A stretch of DNA of 64,000 nucleotides from Paragordius varius (Eukaryota; Animalia; Nematomorpha). The stretch spans positions 3,472,001 to 3,536,000 of the forward strand of contig OZ176053.1 of NCBI GenBank assembly GCA_964247055.1. The letters run 5' to 3'. Of the stretch, positions 1 through 63,338 are shown in pieces. Every line of letters starts with the position of its first letter. The stretch's first letter is position 1. The notes under the pieces are model-generated. The model was not told where the DNA came from. It saw nothing but the letters and a program-made list of their open reading frames with translations, and ran no database searches. Made by a program: the position numbers and the translations under genes.

Positions 1-32396
<32,396 letters not shown>

Positions 32397-54800: not shown

Positions 54801-55944
54801 TGACCAATGGGTTAGGGTGGAGTCAAATCAAAATTTATCAATACAGATAACATTCCATTGCCTAAATAAAATTCATGTATGATATATTAAATTATAATTA
54901 ATTTAATCAGAATTATTAATATATGAACAGCTGAACAGCTTATTTTACTAAATTTTAAAATGTTTAGTAAAAATTATATTTTAAAACCAAATCGCTTTTT
55001 ATTGTGACAATTTTTGATATCAGAAAAGGAGTATGAAAGCATACTGCCCGCGTTTTCCAAAAGATAAAGATGAATCTTGGTTTATGATATTGGCAACAAC
55101 TGATAATCCCGAATTAATAGCTCTGAAACGAATGGGACCTGTAAATACAAATAGACCTTCGACATCAAACATAATGTTTCAGGCACCTGATTTAAAAGGT
55201 TACGTGCGCATGTTTTGAATTGCATATTTTTACTGTATAGACCTGTGTTTACCCGCTAATAATAAAAACCGGTTAGACAATATAAGATTATAGTCATTAA
55301 CAATCATAAGCAATCAATAAATACCACAAATGCAAATATATGACAAAATATTTACATTCCATGGCATCTTAAATTTTCAAAAATATTTAAAGTTTAGATG
55401 TTATAAAAATGGTGTATGGAAGAACGACTGCTTATGATAGAGAGTGTGACTGGTCATACTCAACCCTACTTTTATAAAATTGATCGATATTAACCAAAAA
55501 AGGGGCCAACAAAGTCCTATTACCTTGCCACCTTCCCGCGGTGTTGGCTGGGGCATGAAAATGCGCTAACGGCAAAGGCCAGTTTTCTAATATCTGTAAA
55601 TCATCATTTGTTGTACACAAGGGCATGTGTTATGTAAAAAAATCGCCTCAGAATAACACGAAGTATAAATATTATTAATATAAATTATATCGTGAAAACT
55701 CTGAATCCGGAGTCCTGACCCTTTTATGTTTTACCAAAAATGCATAATTGGATTGTATATGTATTATTTTTCATTTAGTTTTATGAAATCAACTCCATAG
55801 TTTACATTTTACATGTATTGCTATACAATTCAATTTATATAATTTTTTATATGCATAGGCCCCATATTATACACATTATACATAATGAGTGATTGTTATA
55901 TCGGCCTCGATCAACAATACCAATTTGGAATCAATATAGTTTAG
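35568..55944 (+). CDS. ASCC3: Activating signal cointegrator 1 complex subunit 3, tandem Ski2-like helicase with Sec63 domains; start codon uncertain
   Basis: Cassette 1: [37 protein letters not shown]. Cassette 2: [50 protein letters not shown]. Last exon 55859-55944 [22 protein letters not shown] in the second cassette favours ASCC3 over BRR2. Confidence 0.93.
43250..43517. mobile_element. MITE family A copy 4, left end truncated
   Basis: Internal and right-end sequence (repeated gggtgaatttgaattgttc units) match copies 2 and 3. Confidence 0.65.
51881..52043. mobile_element. Palindromic Tc1/mariner-type MITE, family B (TA|CAGT..ACTG|TA)
   Basis: Perfect 43-bp inverted repeat (51904-51946 vs 51978-52020) plus outer arms cagtattcattttaatgg / ccattaaaatgcatactg. 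Confidence 0.85.
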
Positions 55945-56682: not shown

Positions 56683-57754
56683 TTAATTAACGATTCCCGG
56701 TGACAATTGCGCTGACGATATTATACCTTTCCTAAACAAAAAAGTAGCGTAAATTATCTTTGTATTTAAAAATATTTTTAAATTAACCAAAAACGAATAA
56801 GATTTATTGAAAATATGACAACTCTTTTATCTGGAAAAAATTAGCTTTATATAAATAAAATAAAAATAATGGAGAAAAATATTTTTACTCGCATAAAAAT
56901 TGTTCCAAATCTTTGAACGTAAAATTTCTTTTGAGATATTCATGGAGCTTGACAAAATGTGTCAAAAGCTCACCACCCTTGTAAATCAGTAAAGCAGGTA
57001 CGCCATTTGATGACTATAGTGTATAAAAATAAAAAATTTACAAAGTTTTTGCTAATACCAGGTATTTGTGTGGGTGCTGCACAAAATTTTATATAGGGGT
57101 ACATTTTAGAAAAATTTTCCATCATTTGATAAAGTTTTGGATCTGAATTGAGCTAAAAGAGAGGTAAAAAATACGGTTTTACTTCATTGTATATATAGAT
57201 AATGACTAAAACATTAGTATCCTCTTGATCCACATTCCGTATATAATCTTCTCCATTTTGAATTTTAATTAAAGATCCGAACACAGGACTAAAATTGAGA
57301 TAAATAATACAGTTTCTGTAGTTTTGATAGCATTTCTTGCATCTTCTTTTGCCGATAATATTCAAAAAATTCTTTGTCATCTTCATCCATTTCGTTTTGA
57401 ACTTGCTCATCAATTTCACGACATTTTTGGTCCAATTGCTTTTCAATCGACTAAATTTTAAATGTAATTTACATGTGGTAACACGGTAAAAGCAGATTTT
57501 TGTACGCTTTCATAAAGTTCTTTTTGTTTCTTATCTTTTTCAGCCTTCTTAAATTTTTCGTATTCTTTAAAATCTTCGATTACGCCTTTTGGACCAGTCT
57601 ATGTTAAAATTTAATATACTTGTTGGGTTGAACCAGTGACATCCTTCATTACCAATTCTTTCCTTGGTGAAAAATTTCTTTCAACTTCTTCATCTGAAGA
57701 ACTACAGTACGATTCCTTTGGGCCTCCCAATATCTTATCCTCTAGTGTAGACAT
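56683..57754 (-). CDS. PDCL: Phosducin-like protein (PhLP1), 7 exons
   Basis: Exons 57754-57620, 57598-57473, 57450-57311, 57288-57183, 57152-57042, 57013-56889, 56731-56683 give MSTLEDKILG..YCSSSDEE..TGPKGVIEDF..DDKEFFEYYRQKKMQEM..NGVPALLIYKGGEL..DLEQFL, the diagnostic PhLP1 motifs (TGPKGV, LPALLIYKGGEL). Confidence 0.92.
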
Positions 57755-59501
57755 AACCTAATGGGTTTAACTAAAAAACATTTCAGTTGTTTTATTTATA
57801 AAATATAATCCTGGTTATTGCCATAAATATAATGTTGTTAATTCACAGCCACGAGAATCGATCACTTTCAGCAAAGAATTTTAGCAAAATTACCCTTTTA
57901 ACCGGCAAAAATAATAAATATAAAAAACTTTTATACCTTGAGTTTTTATAATAAAAGGTCATACCTATGATTACAAAATTAAAATCATACAAACAAATCG
58001 TAGAAACTTATAGAAAAATATTTTTTTAAAAATCGTTGTACTTTTATCACTTACATTTTTTAAATTTTTGACAATAGAGCTTAAAAAACAAATTAGTGTT
58101 GTGAAGGTGATTCGACATAAATTTAATATCGAACCTTCTCTCTCCTGTAATTTCTATGGTTTTTTTTCTGAGTCCTAAAATTATAGTTCCGAAATTTGAT
58201 TGAAAATAGCTGGTATAAAATAAATAAATAGCAAATATTCTGGTAAATTGTAATTGAAAGTTCAAAGTTAATTAAATATTTTAATCCTAATATACAGTTT
58301 GGTATAATTAACGATATTTTAGAAAAAAAAAATTGACGGCGAAAATTGTTGCGGGGTTTTTTTCAATTATAATTTAAAAAACTTATTTGTATTGACCTTT
58401 TAAAAGTCATAATCTGATTTACTATGCCAAAACCCCAAGAATTGACTTCATTTTTTGAATAACAAAAATTGAACACAATCCATTATATATTTTGAAATTG
58501 TAACTTATAATTTATACATAATTAACTATGTAATCAGGCTAAATATAAAAAAGAAATTGACACTTGGATACAAATTGGAGTACCTATATACCTCAGACTA
58601 TATTTAAGTTAATATTTTTCAAAACTACTGAATGAAAGAGTCCCAATTTAAATTCATTCCTCTATCCTGATAAATATTATATAAATATACCGAAATATAT
58701 AGATAAAAATTAGTATTGAAAAAAGTTCCATATCAAACGACATCGACGCCATTTTTATTTTGCAAAAAGGTAAAATTAAAGCTAATTTATTATTTAAATC
58801 TAATCTAACATTGATAGAAACAGAAAAAGTAGGTAATTTTGTATTAATCTTAAATTTAGCTAATGCCCACATGTCATGTTGACTAAAACCTTTGAATTTT
58901 ATTTTAAAATTAATAGCATATTTTTGAATGAACCCTTTTATATTTCGGTCATTAATGTTATATAAGTGCAAACTTTTGCCATGGTTTCGGTTTCTTCAAT
59001 ATTTATTGAAGTATTTAATTTTAAACAGGCCCAATTTGAATTGAAGGACTGAAATGTATCCAAGCGTTAAATCCTAAAGCGTTCACTCGATAGAGTTTTA
59101 GGCCAAATTATGATTTTTTTATTTAATTCCTTTCAGTTCAGATAGCCTTTAAAAATTCGAAAATCTTTTCAATAATACGCCTTTTCCTCTATATAGTTTT
59201 TTATTTTATTTGTTCTAATTTTTGGCTGAGACAGAAAAATAAAATAGTACTTCCATTTATGATTTCAATTATTTTTCTAAAGTTATTTGCTAGGTATATA
59301 ATCATAATTAATAATGTTTTGATCCTCATCTTGCAGCACAGTGTTACACAGGACAAGAGTTATTTTGCCAAAATTTTGTAAATTAAAATGTTATTAGAAA
59401 ATTAAATAAATATTGCCACCTATATGATTTTCAATGAGTTACCCTCTGCGAAAAACATTCTTTGTAAAAGATTGCAAATATATGATTTTTTTTGAGTAGA
59501 G

Positions 59502-60311: not shown

Positions 60312-63300
60312 TTAACAGTAAGCTTTGATGGTGCACCATCGTAAGCTATCCAACTTTTTATGAAATAGTTCTTTATCAATACAATCTGTTTTTAGCAGTT
60401 TGAGTTGTTGGAAATCCAGATCAATCTTTTTAGTCCAGGTTAAACGTGGACGACCGGGCTTATTGTTCCCGGGTGGAATGATGTCGAATGAGGTCCTGAT
60501 CGGATTGTCAGGATTCATACGATCAAGGTGACCGTAGTACCTCATTCTTTTGAATTGAATGAATTTGTCTATAGGCTCCATTTGTATGTGATTGCGGATA
60601 TCTTGAGGATTTAGTTGCGTTGACATCAGGCGTAGTATGCGATTTTCCGCGCTGATAAAACGTTTCTCTTGAGTTTGTGTCAATGCCATGGTTTCTGTGG
60701 CATATGTCAAAACTGGTCTTATGCCCATTTTATAAATTAAGCCTTTTGTTTTAATAGATATGTGCTTTTGTTTAAGAATGTATTTTAGCTGATGATATTT
60801 TCCCCAGGTACGGTTTATTCTTGCATTTATTGCGCTATTGTTTGATGAGTCTGATGTTATTTTGTCGCCAAGATAGGTAAACTCGGTTACCACTTCAAAG
60901 CTTGAGTTACTAAGGACTATGTGCTTAATTGATGGGGGCGGTGAATGCTGCACGCATGATTCGCATTTGAAATTTATCTGTTCAGATAGTTTGCCGATAA
61001 TGTTTGTACATTTTTTGTGACACCATTTTTTACATGCAGAGCAGAGAATAGAATCAAATCCAACATTTAATCCGCAAACTCCGCATGGGTATTTAATTTC
61101 ATTGTGGGGTTCACCCGTTATCAGGATTTTACTTTTATTTTCATTTATTTTGAATCCGAATTTGGTTAGCTGTTGTTGCCATTGTATGAACATTTTCTCT
61201 AAGTCTGAAATCGAGGTTGCGGTAAGAACTATGTCATCTGCATATATACTTTCATATGGCAGATTTAACCGAATATCGCGAGTAACAGCGTCTAATATTG
61301 TAATAAACAGCAAGGGACTTAAGGCTGAACCTTGATGGAGTCCTACTTTAATTTCAAAGGAATCAGAATCTCCCATAGGGGTTCTAACAAATGTTTTAGA
61401 ATTTTGATATAGAAGCATGATAGCTTGGATTAGTTGTTCATCCACGTTATTTACTTTTAAAGCCCATGGAATTAATGATCTGGGAACTCTATCAAAAGCT
61501 TTCTCCAAATCAAGAAAAAGATGATATAGTTTTTTATTTTTTAAAAGATAGTTATCTTGTATACGTTTTAAGACGAATATGGCGTCTGTAGTTGAGTGGC
61601 TTGGACGGAAGGCAAATTGAGAGGATGATAATGTTACCTGGTTCCTTAATTTATTTTCTAATACAACTTCGAATATTTTTAAAGCATGTTCTAAAAGTTT
61701 AATCGATCTATAGGAAGAACATTCTAACTGACTGCCTTTATTTTTATAAATGGGGATTGTAATGCTTTCTTCCCAATCCGGCGGTATGGTTTGGTATCGA
61801 ATTATAAGATTAAAAAGATTAGTGAGGTATTGTAATCCGATTTTTCCTGATTTTTTTATTATATCGGAAGATAGTTGGGTAGGTCCACATGATTTATTAT
61901 TTTTCATTTTTTTTAGCGCATTTTCCACATCAGCTAACGAAAATTCTAAAATCGAATGTTTATTGTTGATATTCATGGAAGGAATATGATATGGATTTGT
62001 TGTATTCAGAAGATCTTTGGTATAGTCTTCCCATATTTTTATAACCTCGGAATGATTTGTTTGAATATTACCATTTTTATCTTTAATATATTTCGTTTTG
62101 GGAATATCTTTTTTGTTTTCATTTGATAATTTCATTCGATTAAAGATTTTGAAATTTTTTGCATCCTTCTCTAGCGACTCTGCAATTTTTATGCTGTTTT
62201 CGTGTTTGAGTTTGGTAATTAATTTCGCAACTTCGCTACGTAATTGTAAGTATTTTTTTCGATCTTCCTCTTTATGGGTTTTTTTCCACAATCGAAAGGC
62301 TCGGTTTCGTGATTTGATTTGGGGTTTAATCTCATCACTCCACCACCAATTTGACTTCCTTTTCCTAGCGCCCTTTGTCATGCCACATATTGCCTTGGTG
62401 TTCTTGAGTAAGGAATTTTTAAAAAGATCCCAGGTTTGACCCACGTTGTTATCGGTTAAGCGACTTTCGTTTAAATCTATATTGACAGCTTCCATAAACT
62501 TATCAGCATATATGGGTTTTTGAAGCATTTTAATGTTTGGTTTGGGTTTGTGGTGTCTTATTGGTATGGATTTGGAATTTGATCCAAATAGTAAGGTAGA
62601 TACTACTAGCCTATGTTGGGTGTCAGTATTGTAACATTTTGTATCATTGCATATTTTTCTTTTCTCCTTTGGAATCAGAATATAATCAATTTGAGATTTT
62701 GCATTTCCTGAGGAATATGTATATAGCTTATGATCAGGTTTGGTAAAGTTTGTATTTAATATGCATAGGTTGAACATTGCACAGAAATCAAGGACGGATT
62801 CTCCTTCTTTGTTTAGCAGTCCGTATCCAAAACCACCATGTATACCAGCATATTCGATTCCTTGTTTACCCACGTGTCCATTCATGTCGCCGGCAATCAT
62901 TATCAGGTCTTTATCATGAACTTTACGCATTATTTCAAAAAGTTGATCCCAAAATTTTTGTTTTAGACTGTCTGCGAGTCCTGGTTGTGGGGCATATACA
63001 CATATAATATTTATTATGGAGTTACTATGTACTAATCTAATTTGGATTATACGGTCATTGTGTCTTAAAACATCGAGGATGTTGTCACAGTGCTTTTCAT
63101 GTAAAAGAATTCCGACACCTCCTGTCGCCTTATTTCCTCCCTGATAAAAGCATTTATAATCACCAGCGGTGAAGTTGCCGCTTCCAGAATACCTTGTTTC
63201 TTGTAAGCAACACACATCGACTTGTAATAGTTTAAGCTTTTCTACAATATCTATAGTTTTGTTTCTTAGAGATCCTACATTCCACGTCGCATATTTAAAA

Positions 63301-63338
63301 GTTTGTCGTTTTAAAATCATTTTAGTTGTAGTTATCAT
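60312..63338 (-). CDS. LINE ORF2: APE endonuclease + reverse transcriptase with PHD-like Cys-rich insert (1008 aa)
   Basis: TWNVGSL, CLQETR, VYAPQ, GDMNGHVG, QIDYIL (APE); YRSIKLL, FLDLEKAFD, GLHQGSALSP, YADD, FTYLG (RT); CGVC..ILCSACKKWCHKKC..CESC insert. No stops or frameshifts. Confidence 0.96.
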   Translation of the reverse strand: MITTTKMILKRQTFKYATWNVGSLRNKTIDIVEKLKLLQVDVCCLQETRYSGSGNFTAGDYKCFYQGGNKATGGVGILLHEKHCDNILDVLRHNDRIIQIRLVHSNSIINIICVYAPQPGLADSLKQKFWDQLFEIMRKVHDKDLIMIAGDMNGHVGKQGIEYAGIHGGFGYGLLNKEGESVLDFCAMFNLCILNTNFTKPDHKLYTYSSGNAKSQIDYILIPKEKRKICNDTKCYNTDTQHRLVVSTLLFGSNSKSIPIRHHKPKPNIKMLQKPIYADKFMEAVNIDLNESRLTDNNVGQTWDLFKNSLLKNTKAICGMTKGARKRKSNWWWSDEIKPQIKSRNRAFRLWKKTHKEEDRKKYLQLRSEVAKLITKLKHENSIKIAESLEKDAKNFKIFNRMKLSNENKKDIPKTKYIKDKNGNIQTNHSEVIKIWEDYTKDLLNTTNPYHIPSMNINNKHSILEFSLADVENALKKMKNNKSCGPTQLSSDIIKKSGKIGLQYLTNLFNLIIRYQTIPPDWEESITIPIYKNKGSQLECSSYRSIKLLEHALKIFEVVLENKLRNQVTLSSSQFAFRPSHSTTDAIFVLKRIQDNYLLKNKKLYHLFLDLEKAFDRVPRSLIPWALKVNNVDEQLIQAIMLLYQNSKTFVRTPMGDSDSFEIKVGLHQGSALSPLLFITILDAVTRDIRLNLPYESIYADDIVLTATSISDLEKMFIQWQQQLTKFGFKINENKSKILITGEPHNEIKYPCGVCGLNVGFDSILCSACKKWCHKKCTNIIGKLSEQINFKCESCVQHSPPPSIKHIVLSNSSFEVVTEFTYLGDKITSDSSNNSAINARINRTWGKYHQLKYILKQKHISIKTKGLIYKMGIRPVLTYATETMALTQTQEKRFISAENRILRLMSTQLNPQDIRNHIQMEPIDKFIQFKRMRYYGHLDRMNPDNPIRTSFDIIPPGNNKPGRPRLTWTKKIDLDFQQLKLLKTDCIDKELFHKKLDSLRWCTIKAYC

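Follow-up and report, generated by a model that had tools for sequence, protein, structure and literature searches.

The gene for phosducin-like protein (PDCL, or PhLP1) in the window, meaning the whole 64-kb stretch of DNA from the nematomorph Paragordius varius analysed here, is interrupted by five GT-AG segments of 21–30 nt that are almost certainly genuine introns, which brings the animal groups with introns of this size from the two published so far to three. As judged from the sequence and its comparison with other animals, these segments are very probably U2-type introns of a working gene, which have shrunk from ancient introns and are most likely removed by the ordinary major spliceosome. 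For animal introns, a lower limit of ~30 nt is generally assumed. Introns below this length test how little RNA may separate the 5′ site, the branch point, and the 3′ site if a spliceosome is to work on them.

The gene occupies 57754–56683 on the minus strand. From its start ATG at 57754, the frame is open solely when the five segments (21, 22, 22, 30, and 28 nt) are skipped, giving the following exons and introns in the direction of transcription.

57620–57754, minus strand: exon 1, 135 nt; 45 codons from the ATG, ending in ...GSTQQ; 42% identity to the Gordionus N-terminus
57599–57619, minus strand: intron 1, 21 nt, phase 0, GTATAT...CATAG (GTATATTAAATTTTAACATAG)
57473–57598, minus strand: exon 2, 126 nt; begins with TGPKGVIEDF; Pfam Phosducin 23–57
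57451–57472, minus strand: intron 2, 22 nt, phase 0, GTAAATTACATTTAAAATTTAG
57311–57450, minus strand: exon 3, 140 nt; Pfam Phosducin 88–120
57289–57310, minus strand: intron 3, 22 nt, phase 2, GTATTATTTATCTCAATTTTAG
57183–57288, minus strand: exon 4, 106 nt; Pfam Phosducin 122–155
57153–57182, minus strand: intron 4, 30 nt, phase 0, GTAAAACCGTATTTTTTACCTCTCTTTTAG, with the pyrimidine run CCTCTCTTTT ahead of the AG
57042–57152, minus strand: exon 5, 111 nt; ...YPYIKFC...PGISKNF; 51% identity to Gordionus, with the identical end GISKNF
57014–57041, minus strand: intron 5, 28 nt, phase 0, GTAAATTTTTTATTTTTATACACTATAG
56889–57013, minus strand: exon 6, 125 nt; SSNGVPALLIYKGGEL...EQFLC and two bases of a split codon; Pfam Phosducin 195–236
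56732–56888, minus strand: intron 6, 157 nt, phase 2, GA/GTAAAA...TTGTTTAG/G
56683–56731, minus strand: exon 7, 49 nt; KGIISSAQLSPGIVN; stop TAA at 56685–56683

The five short introns are all GT-AG with 14–30% G+C, and intron 6 is GT-AG as well. Read directly from the sequence, the five segments have the minus-strand coordinates and lengths assigned to them in the preliminary description, and its account of their retention is borne out: keeping the 21-mer brings in an in-frame TAA, at which the listed open reading frame 57611–57754 stops, and a frame shift results when the 28-mer or one of the 22-mers is kept. If retained, the 30-nt intron 4 ends in an in-frame TAG. Intron 3 splits the codon CT/T for Leu, the residue that Gordionus PDCL has at the same place. 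The five introns had thus been drawn correctly, whereas the sixth intron (56888–56732) and exon 7 (56731–56683) had been missed. Intron 6 was placed by the homology of exon 7 and because Gordionus, scallop, and Limulus PDCL each have a phase-2 intron at this codon; the tail encoded by exon 7 resembles those at the C-terminus of the Gordionus (NGILSAHE) and Anopheles (NGIIN) proteins. The 3′ end assigned to intron 6 depends on the homology of these 15 residues, and with one of the nearer AGs the protein would be slightly shorter. Retention of intron 6 leads to an immediate stop (GAG TAA, 56890–56885), leaving a protein of near full length.

On sequence grounds, the gene is PDCL of the PhLP1 type. 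PhLP1 is a CCT co-chaperone in G-protein βγ assembly. When the translation of each exon was searched separately, the Pfam Phosducin (PF02114) matches of exons 2, 3, 4, and 6 were colinear, with exon 6 alone scoring 36.7 bits, over the curated cut-off, and exon 2 with its TGPKGVI region matched PDB chains of phosducin-like protein from solved CCT complexes. The best match to exon 6 in a full-library protein search was the phosducin-like protein of Gordionus sp. m RMFG-2023 (63% identity; 60–63% for exon 6 against this PDCL). The translations of exons 1–6 tile the Gordionus protein (XP_065316106.1) end to end at 42–60% identity, and no residue is lost or duplicated where they meet, so that removal of the segments restores PhLP1 homology on both sides, as had been claimed. 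Every exon is open and conserved, both in translation and in alignment to Gordionus PDCL. The relatives of Gordionus PDCL in a protein search were all named phosducin-like protein or phosducin-like protein 1, with identities of at most 40% for all matches besides its own isoform, making PDCL/PhLP1, not PDCL3 or TXNDC9, the closest relatives. A whole-genome profile scan of the 110.6-Mb genome found a single Phosducin-family locus, recovering the same three pieces. The window PDCL shares with known PhLP1 the TGPKGVI motif in the N-terminal part, a helical region of acidic character, and a thioredoxin-like C-terminal part; unlike known PhLP1, it is short (about 240 residues by exon sum), and its function is a predicted one. 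The in-frame 21-nt segment prompted consideration of a ciliate-type genetic code, which was rejected: Gln is encoded by CAA/CAG in the exons, TAA and TAG are absent from their frame, and the relatives are animals.

The age of the introns was assessed from the structures of three annotated PDCL genes (Gordionus, the scallop Ylistrum, and Limulus), which we rebuilt by exact splicing of the loci to their proteins. The phases are 0, 0, 2, 0, 0, and 2 in all three reference genes, and six of six introns in the window gene share both codon position and phase with them. The sites, common to all four species, and the intron lengths are listed 5′ to 3′.

Site 1, before TGPKGV: 21 nt in the window gene, 38 nt in Gordionus, 1285 nt in the scallop, 9423 nt in Limulus
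Site 2, after the helix ending in ...SH or ...SS: 22, 39, 1439, and 17088 nt in the same order
Site 3, within the codon before P-x-F/H-G: 22, 41, 492, and 2943 nt
Site 4, after I-Y/H-x-x-E/Q: 30, 41, 286, and 4380 nt
Site 5, before x-x-G-V-P-A-L-L: 28, 43, 297, and 1039 nt
Site 6, within the codon after E-x-F-L-x: 157, 43, 423, and 7708 nt

In addition, exons 2, 3, 4, and 6 equal those of Gordionus PDCL in length. Together with the colinear Pfam matches and the gapless tiling, this agreement lies far outside what chance would produce. The six positions common to the four species argue that the segments are shrunken ancient bilaterian introns, rather than insertions or chance GT..AG pairs. In the proposed course, introns of the bilaterian ancestor, which measure kilobases in Limulus and hundreds of nucleotides or more in the scallop, would have shrunk to ~40 nt in Gordionus and to 21–30 nt (with one of 157 nt) here. 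Intron length climbs from 5′ to 3′ in both the window gene and Gordionus PDCL, which with six introns per gene could be chance. Exon 4 of Gordionus PDCL ends in 18 residues (VIDKENPNVTVIIFIYNE) that isoform X2 lacks, which implies an alternative 5′ site within that exon.

Outside the window, two genes were read for introns of this class.

G000:C1:5438012-5438454 (L042:1295-1737), minus strand: RPS12, in which GT-AG segments of 21, 22, and 28 nt need removal
G000:C5:3276150-3276900 (L050), plus strand: SNU13/15.5K-like gene (L7Ae family), its conserved exon pieces separated by three GT-AG gaps of ~32, 32, and 25 nt, placed by eye

Both were found via a whole-genome scan for the L7Ae family. The horsehair worm Gordionus is the nearest relative in public data, being the best relative for two genes. 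The 21-mer of RPS12 is in frame and stop-free, so that a caller working from open reading frames would run through it and add seven residues, exactly those that Gordionus RPS12 is without. The introns shorter than 30 nt thus comprise those of 21, 22, 22, and 28 nt in PDCL and all three in RPS12. The SF1 gene (G000:C5, L041:925-1505), by contrast, has in its helix-hairpin region GT-AG introns of ordinary size, 124 and 381 nt. An annotation-free length scan is powerless here, because in 264 kb, where GT..AG pairs bridging open frames of at least 30–40 codons were counted, five decoy motif pairs were as frequent as GTA..YAG in every length bin. Two further micro-intron candidates in the window were dropped: one in Cav1 at 19684–19705, the flanks of which are not coding-like, and one upstream of PDCL at 57990–57965, which precedes the conserved start codon.

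The splice signals of the short PDCL introns are sparse. Their 5′ sites (GTATAT, GTAAAT, GTATTA, and GTAAAA) all begin with GTA and are weak, none having G at +5, and among the five only the 30-nt intron has a clear pyrimidine run before the AG. In the five introns of 21–22 nt (three of PDCL and two of RPS12), a yUnA-like motif provides a candidate branch A 14–16 nt from the 5′ end and 5–8 nt from the AG, the motif being loose for sequence of 26% G+C and possibly due to chance; it is too loose in AT-rich sequence to carry weight as branch-point evidence. The core snRNAs are all present in a genome scan and look standard: the U1 copies with the best scores start with the canonical ACUUACCUG, their U2 counterparts contain GUGUAGUA (GUAGUA, for branch-point pairing), the best-scoring U5 has the standard loop I, and U6 has ACAGAGA and the AGC triad. 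For SF1, the protein that binds the branch point, the genome encodes the helix-hairpin domain. The modified mechanism put forward in the preliminary description is therefore unsupported at the level of RNA recognition, a statement that concerns the snRNA level only.

It is most plausible that the ordinary major spliceosome would remove these introns, recognising them across the intron with very tight spacing, with the weak GTA-type 5′ site pairing with the canonical U1. The branch adenosine would then lie about 14–16 nt from the 5′ end and 5–8 nt from the AG in the introns of 21–22 nt, a placement that we infer. In a public run search, no run holding the stretch was on record as RNA; two runs of the same species label, presumed to be RNA, match only a low-complexity piece of 35–42 nt, with unlike flanks. 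Likewise, the public protein collection gave no spliced product of PDCL or RPS12 from this species with Gordionus PDCL and the RPS12 open frame from exon 1 to exon 2 as queries. We infer the removal of the segments from RNA on the basis of the gene anatomy, the homology of the exons, the orthologous positions, the DNA described below, and the canonical snRNAs.

AT-rich, low-complexity sequence is error-prone in both assembly and polishing, and the true introns might accordingly be longer, having been collapsed or mis-polished. We examined this possibility, of which the collapse had been named in the preliminary description as fatal to its reading, on contigs built independently from the public DNA runs of two studies (at least 99% identity over the gene). 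A contig of run X5 covers 57270–57714 (445 nt, introns 1–3) and one of run X1 covers 57055–57303 (intron 4), both gapless; intron 5 carries in both runs a +T allele at 57029 (29 nt), at about half of the depth in X1, and has one base variant in the public DNA runs as well. Introns 1–5 are thus spanned by contigs of the two studies, there are no loose ends or joints at the introns, and the 1-nt length difference between reads in one intron, which might be taken as a sign of error, is the +T allele and the only departure from the assembled lengths. Equal intron lengths in the DNA runs of the two studies rule out a collapsed assembly, and the probability left to an artefact of assembly or polishing is vanishingly small. 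Programmed DNA elimination is known in some nematodes and in ciliates, and could conceivably remove short internal segments from the DNA of somatic cells. However, the runs X1 and X5 contain the segments throughout, with no joined form free of them, and under splicing one would expect just such GT-AG ends, at places where orthologous genes have introns; their removal from the DNA is scarcely credible.

The segments could also be small insertions in a dead, decaying copy of PDCL, with GT-AG ends by chance. GT and AG are common in AT-rich DNA, and in the decoy scan GT..AG pairs bridging open frames were frequent by chance; moreover, the search for RNA and protein products from this species gave nothing. 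A pseudogene is nonetheless very improbable, because all six segments agree exactly, in codon and in phase, with introns of three other animals, four exon lengths equal those of Gordionus, each exon is open and conserved, and the genome scan found this single Phosducin-family locus. The variants point in the same direction: the 13 calls in the exons comprise 8 synonymous changes and 5 conservative replacements, and the +T in intron 5 is the sole indel within PDCL, the remaining indels being in the flanks. This pattern, along with the lack of a joined form in the DNA, argues against both a pseudogene and DNA-level removal. Finally, the introns may be real and yet poorly or conditionally spliced, being often retained so that the message is partly unproductive, or splicing serves as a control point. 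This is compatible with the weak 5′ sites lacking G at +5, with the inefficient splicing of extremely short microsporidian introns (PMC13644364), and with the immediate stop and near-full-length protein upon retention of intron 6. However, the same class of introns interrupts RPS12, a gene needing very high expression, which argues against generally poor splicing, and we consider this explanation unlikely.

Regarding the intron sizes in the window, the neighbouring Cav1 introns had been given as 65–4100 nt, and the one case checked agrees: the intron at 12371–13778 has 1408 nt, about 43 kb from PDCL, with flanking exons corresponding to residues 643–698 and 702–758 of the solved Cav1.2 and VFQ between them. 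The coexistence of two size classes, as had also been claimed, is therefore real (21–30 nt versus 157 nt in PDCL and 1408 nt in Cav1). Animals normally have a sharp peak of minimal introns together with a long tail, and PDCL of Gordionus has a tight set of 38–43 nt; the only unusual thing in the intron sizes of the window is where the short peak lies. Two elements lie near PDCL.

60312–63338, minus strand: uninterrupted 1008-codon open reading frame of an RTE-type non-LTR retrotransposon (endonuclease and reverse transcriptase), adjoining PDCL
55505–55640: element of ~130 nt with about 50% G+C, a dispersed repeat, between ASCC3 and PDCL

The repeat has 40 scored copies (from 162 candidates) with 82–94% identity on many contigs, and Rfam and tRNA scans of the 64-kb window found nothing. 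The intact RTE frame beside PDCL indicates that tiny introns coexist with apparently young transposons. Taken with the introns of 157 nt and 1.4 kb and the dispersed repeats, it suggests that intron shrinkage is not tied to overall compaction.

In a study of 51 animal genomes (PMC13644364; Mol Biol Evol, September 2026), introns shorter than 30 nt were found only in myxobolids and Dicyema japonicum, and further animal lineages with such introns were predicted; recognition in myxozoans was proposed to be conventional, U2-dependent, and across the intron, as indicated by conserved snRNA sequence. The dicyemids named as a known exception in the preliminary description thus stand, while its list was incomplete in omitting the myxobolid myxozoans. 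The word Nematomorpha is absent from the text of that study (species list aside), and the word intron is absent from the Gordionus genome paper and from a comparative paper on Nematomorpha and Mermithidae. A search for hairworm or horsehair worm together with introns gave nothing relevant among the full texts open to search, a scope that does not extend to the main nematomorph genome paper. Like D. japonicum and the myxobolids (Henneguya, Thelohanellus, and Myxobolus), the present genome belongs to a parasitic animal and has GT-AG introns of ~20–30 nt in protein-coding genes, weak splice-site motifs, and conserved snRNA sequences. Unlike in those groups, the lineage is ecdysozoan, a nematomorph, and the tiny introns share the gene with an intron of 157 nt and the window with one of 1.4 kb, the RTE, and repeats. 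The introns resemble the minimal class of Gordionus in the same six PDCL positions and phases and in the AT-rich GTA...AG style; on the other hand, the short class is roughly half (21–30 nt) that of Gordionus (about 38–43 nt) and of other ecdysozoans, and one PDCL intron (157 nt) is outside the short class, unlike in Gordionus. It is likely that Nematomorpha contain a third and independent animal lineage with introns below 30 nt, and that within the phylum the short class was halved from ~40 nt, as in Gordionus, to ~21–30 nt without compaction and with snRNA recognition unchanged.

The comparison is cleaner than with Dicyema or the myxobolids, since the same introns measure ~40 nt in a related worm, and the tiny ones occur beside ordinary and kilobase introns with standard snRNAs. 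Given standard snRNA recognition and orthologous introns of ~40 nt, the cause is to be sought in the spliceosomal proteins or in mutation and selection acting on intron length. If this holds, such genes would be broken up by gene finders and completeness tools in which the minimal intron is set longer, and the heavy loss of universal genes reported for Nematomorpha could partly be an artefact of annotation. Some micro-introns are in frame and stop-free, such as the RPS12 21-mer, and all are below the usual minimum of gene finders, so that annotation and BUSCO-type scores may mislead.

As to the snRNA genes themselves, those of U1 are clustered at G000:C6:565000-634000, with many decayed copies (31–124 bits) and few that look intact, and those of U2 form a large array at G000:C3:257000-528000, again with many degraded copies and few that look intact. 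A U6atac gene (L040:1501-1643) scores 66 bits, over the cut-off, and a weak U12-like gene (L039:1501-1651) scores 34 bits, under the cut-off, although its 5′ branch-site region is canonical; this worm may thus have kept the minor spliceosome.
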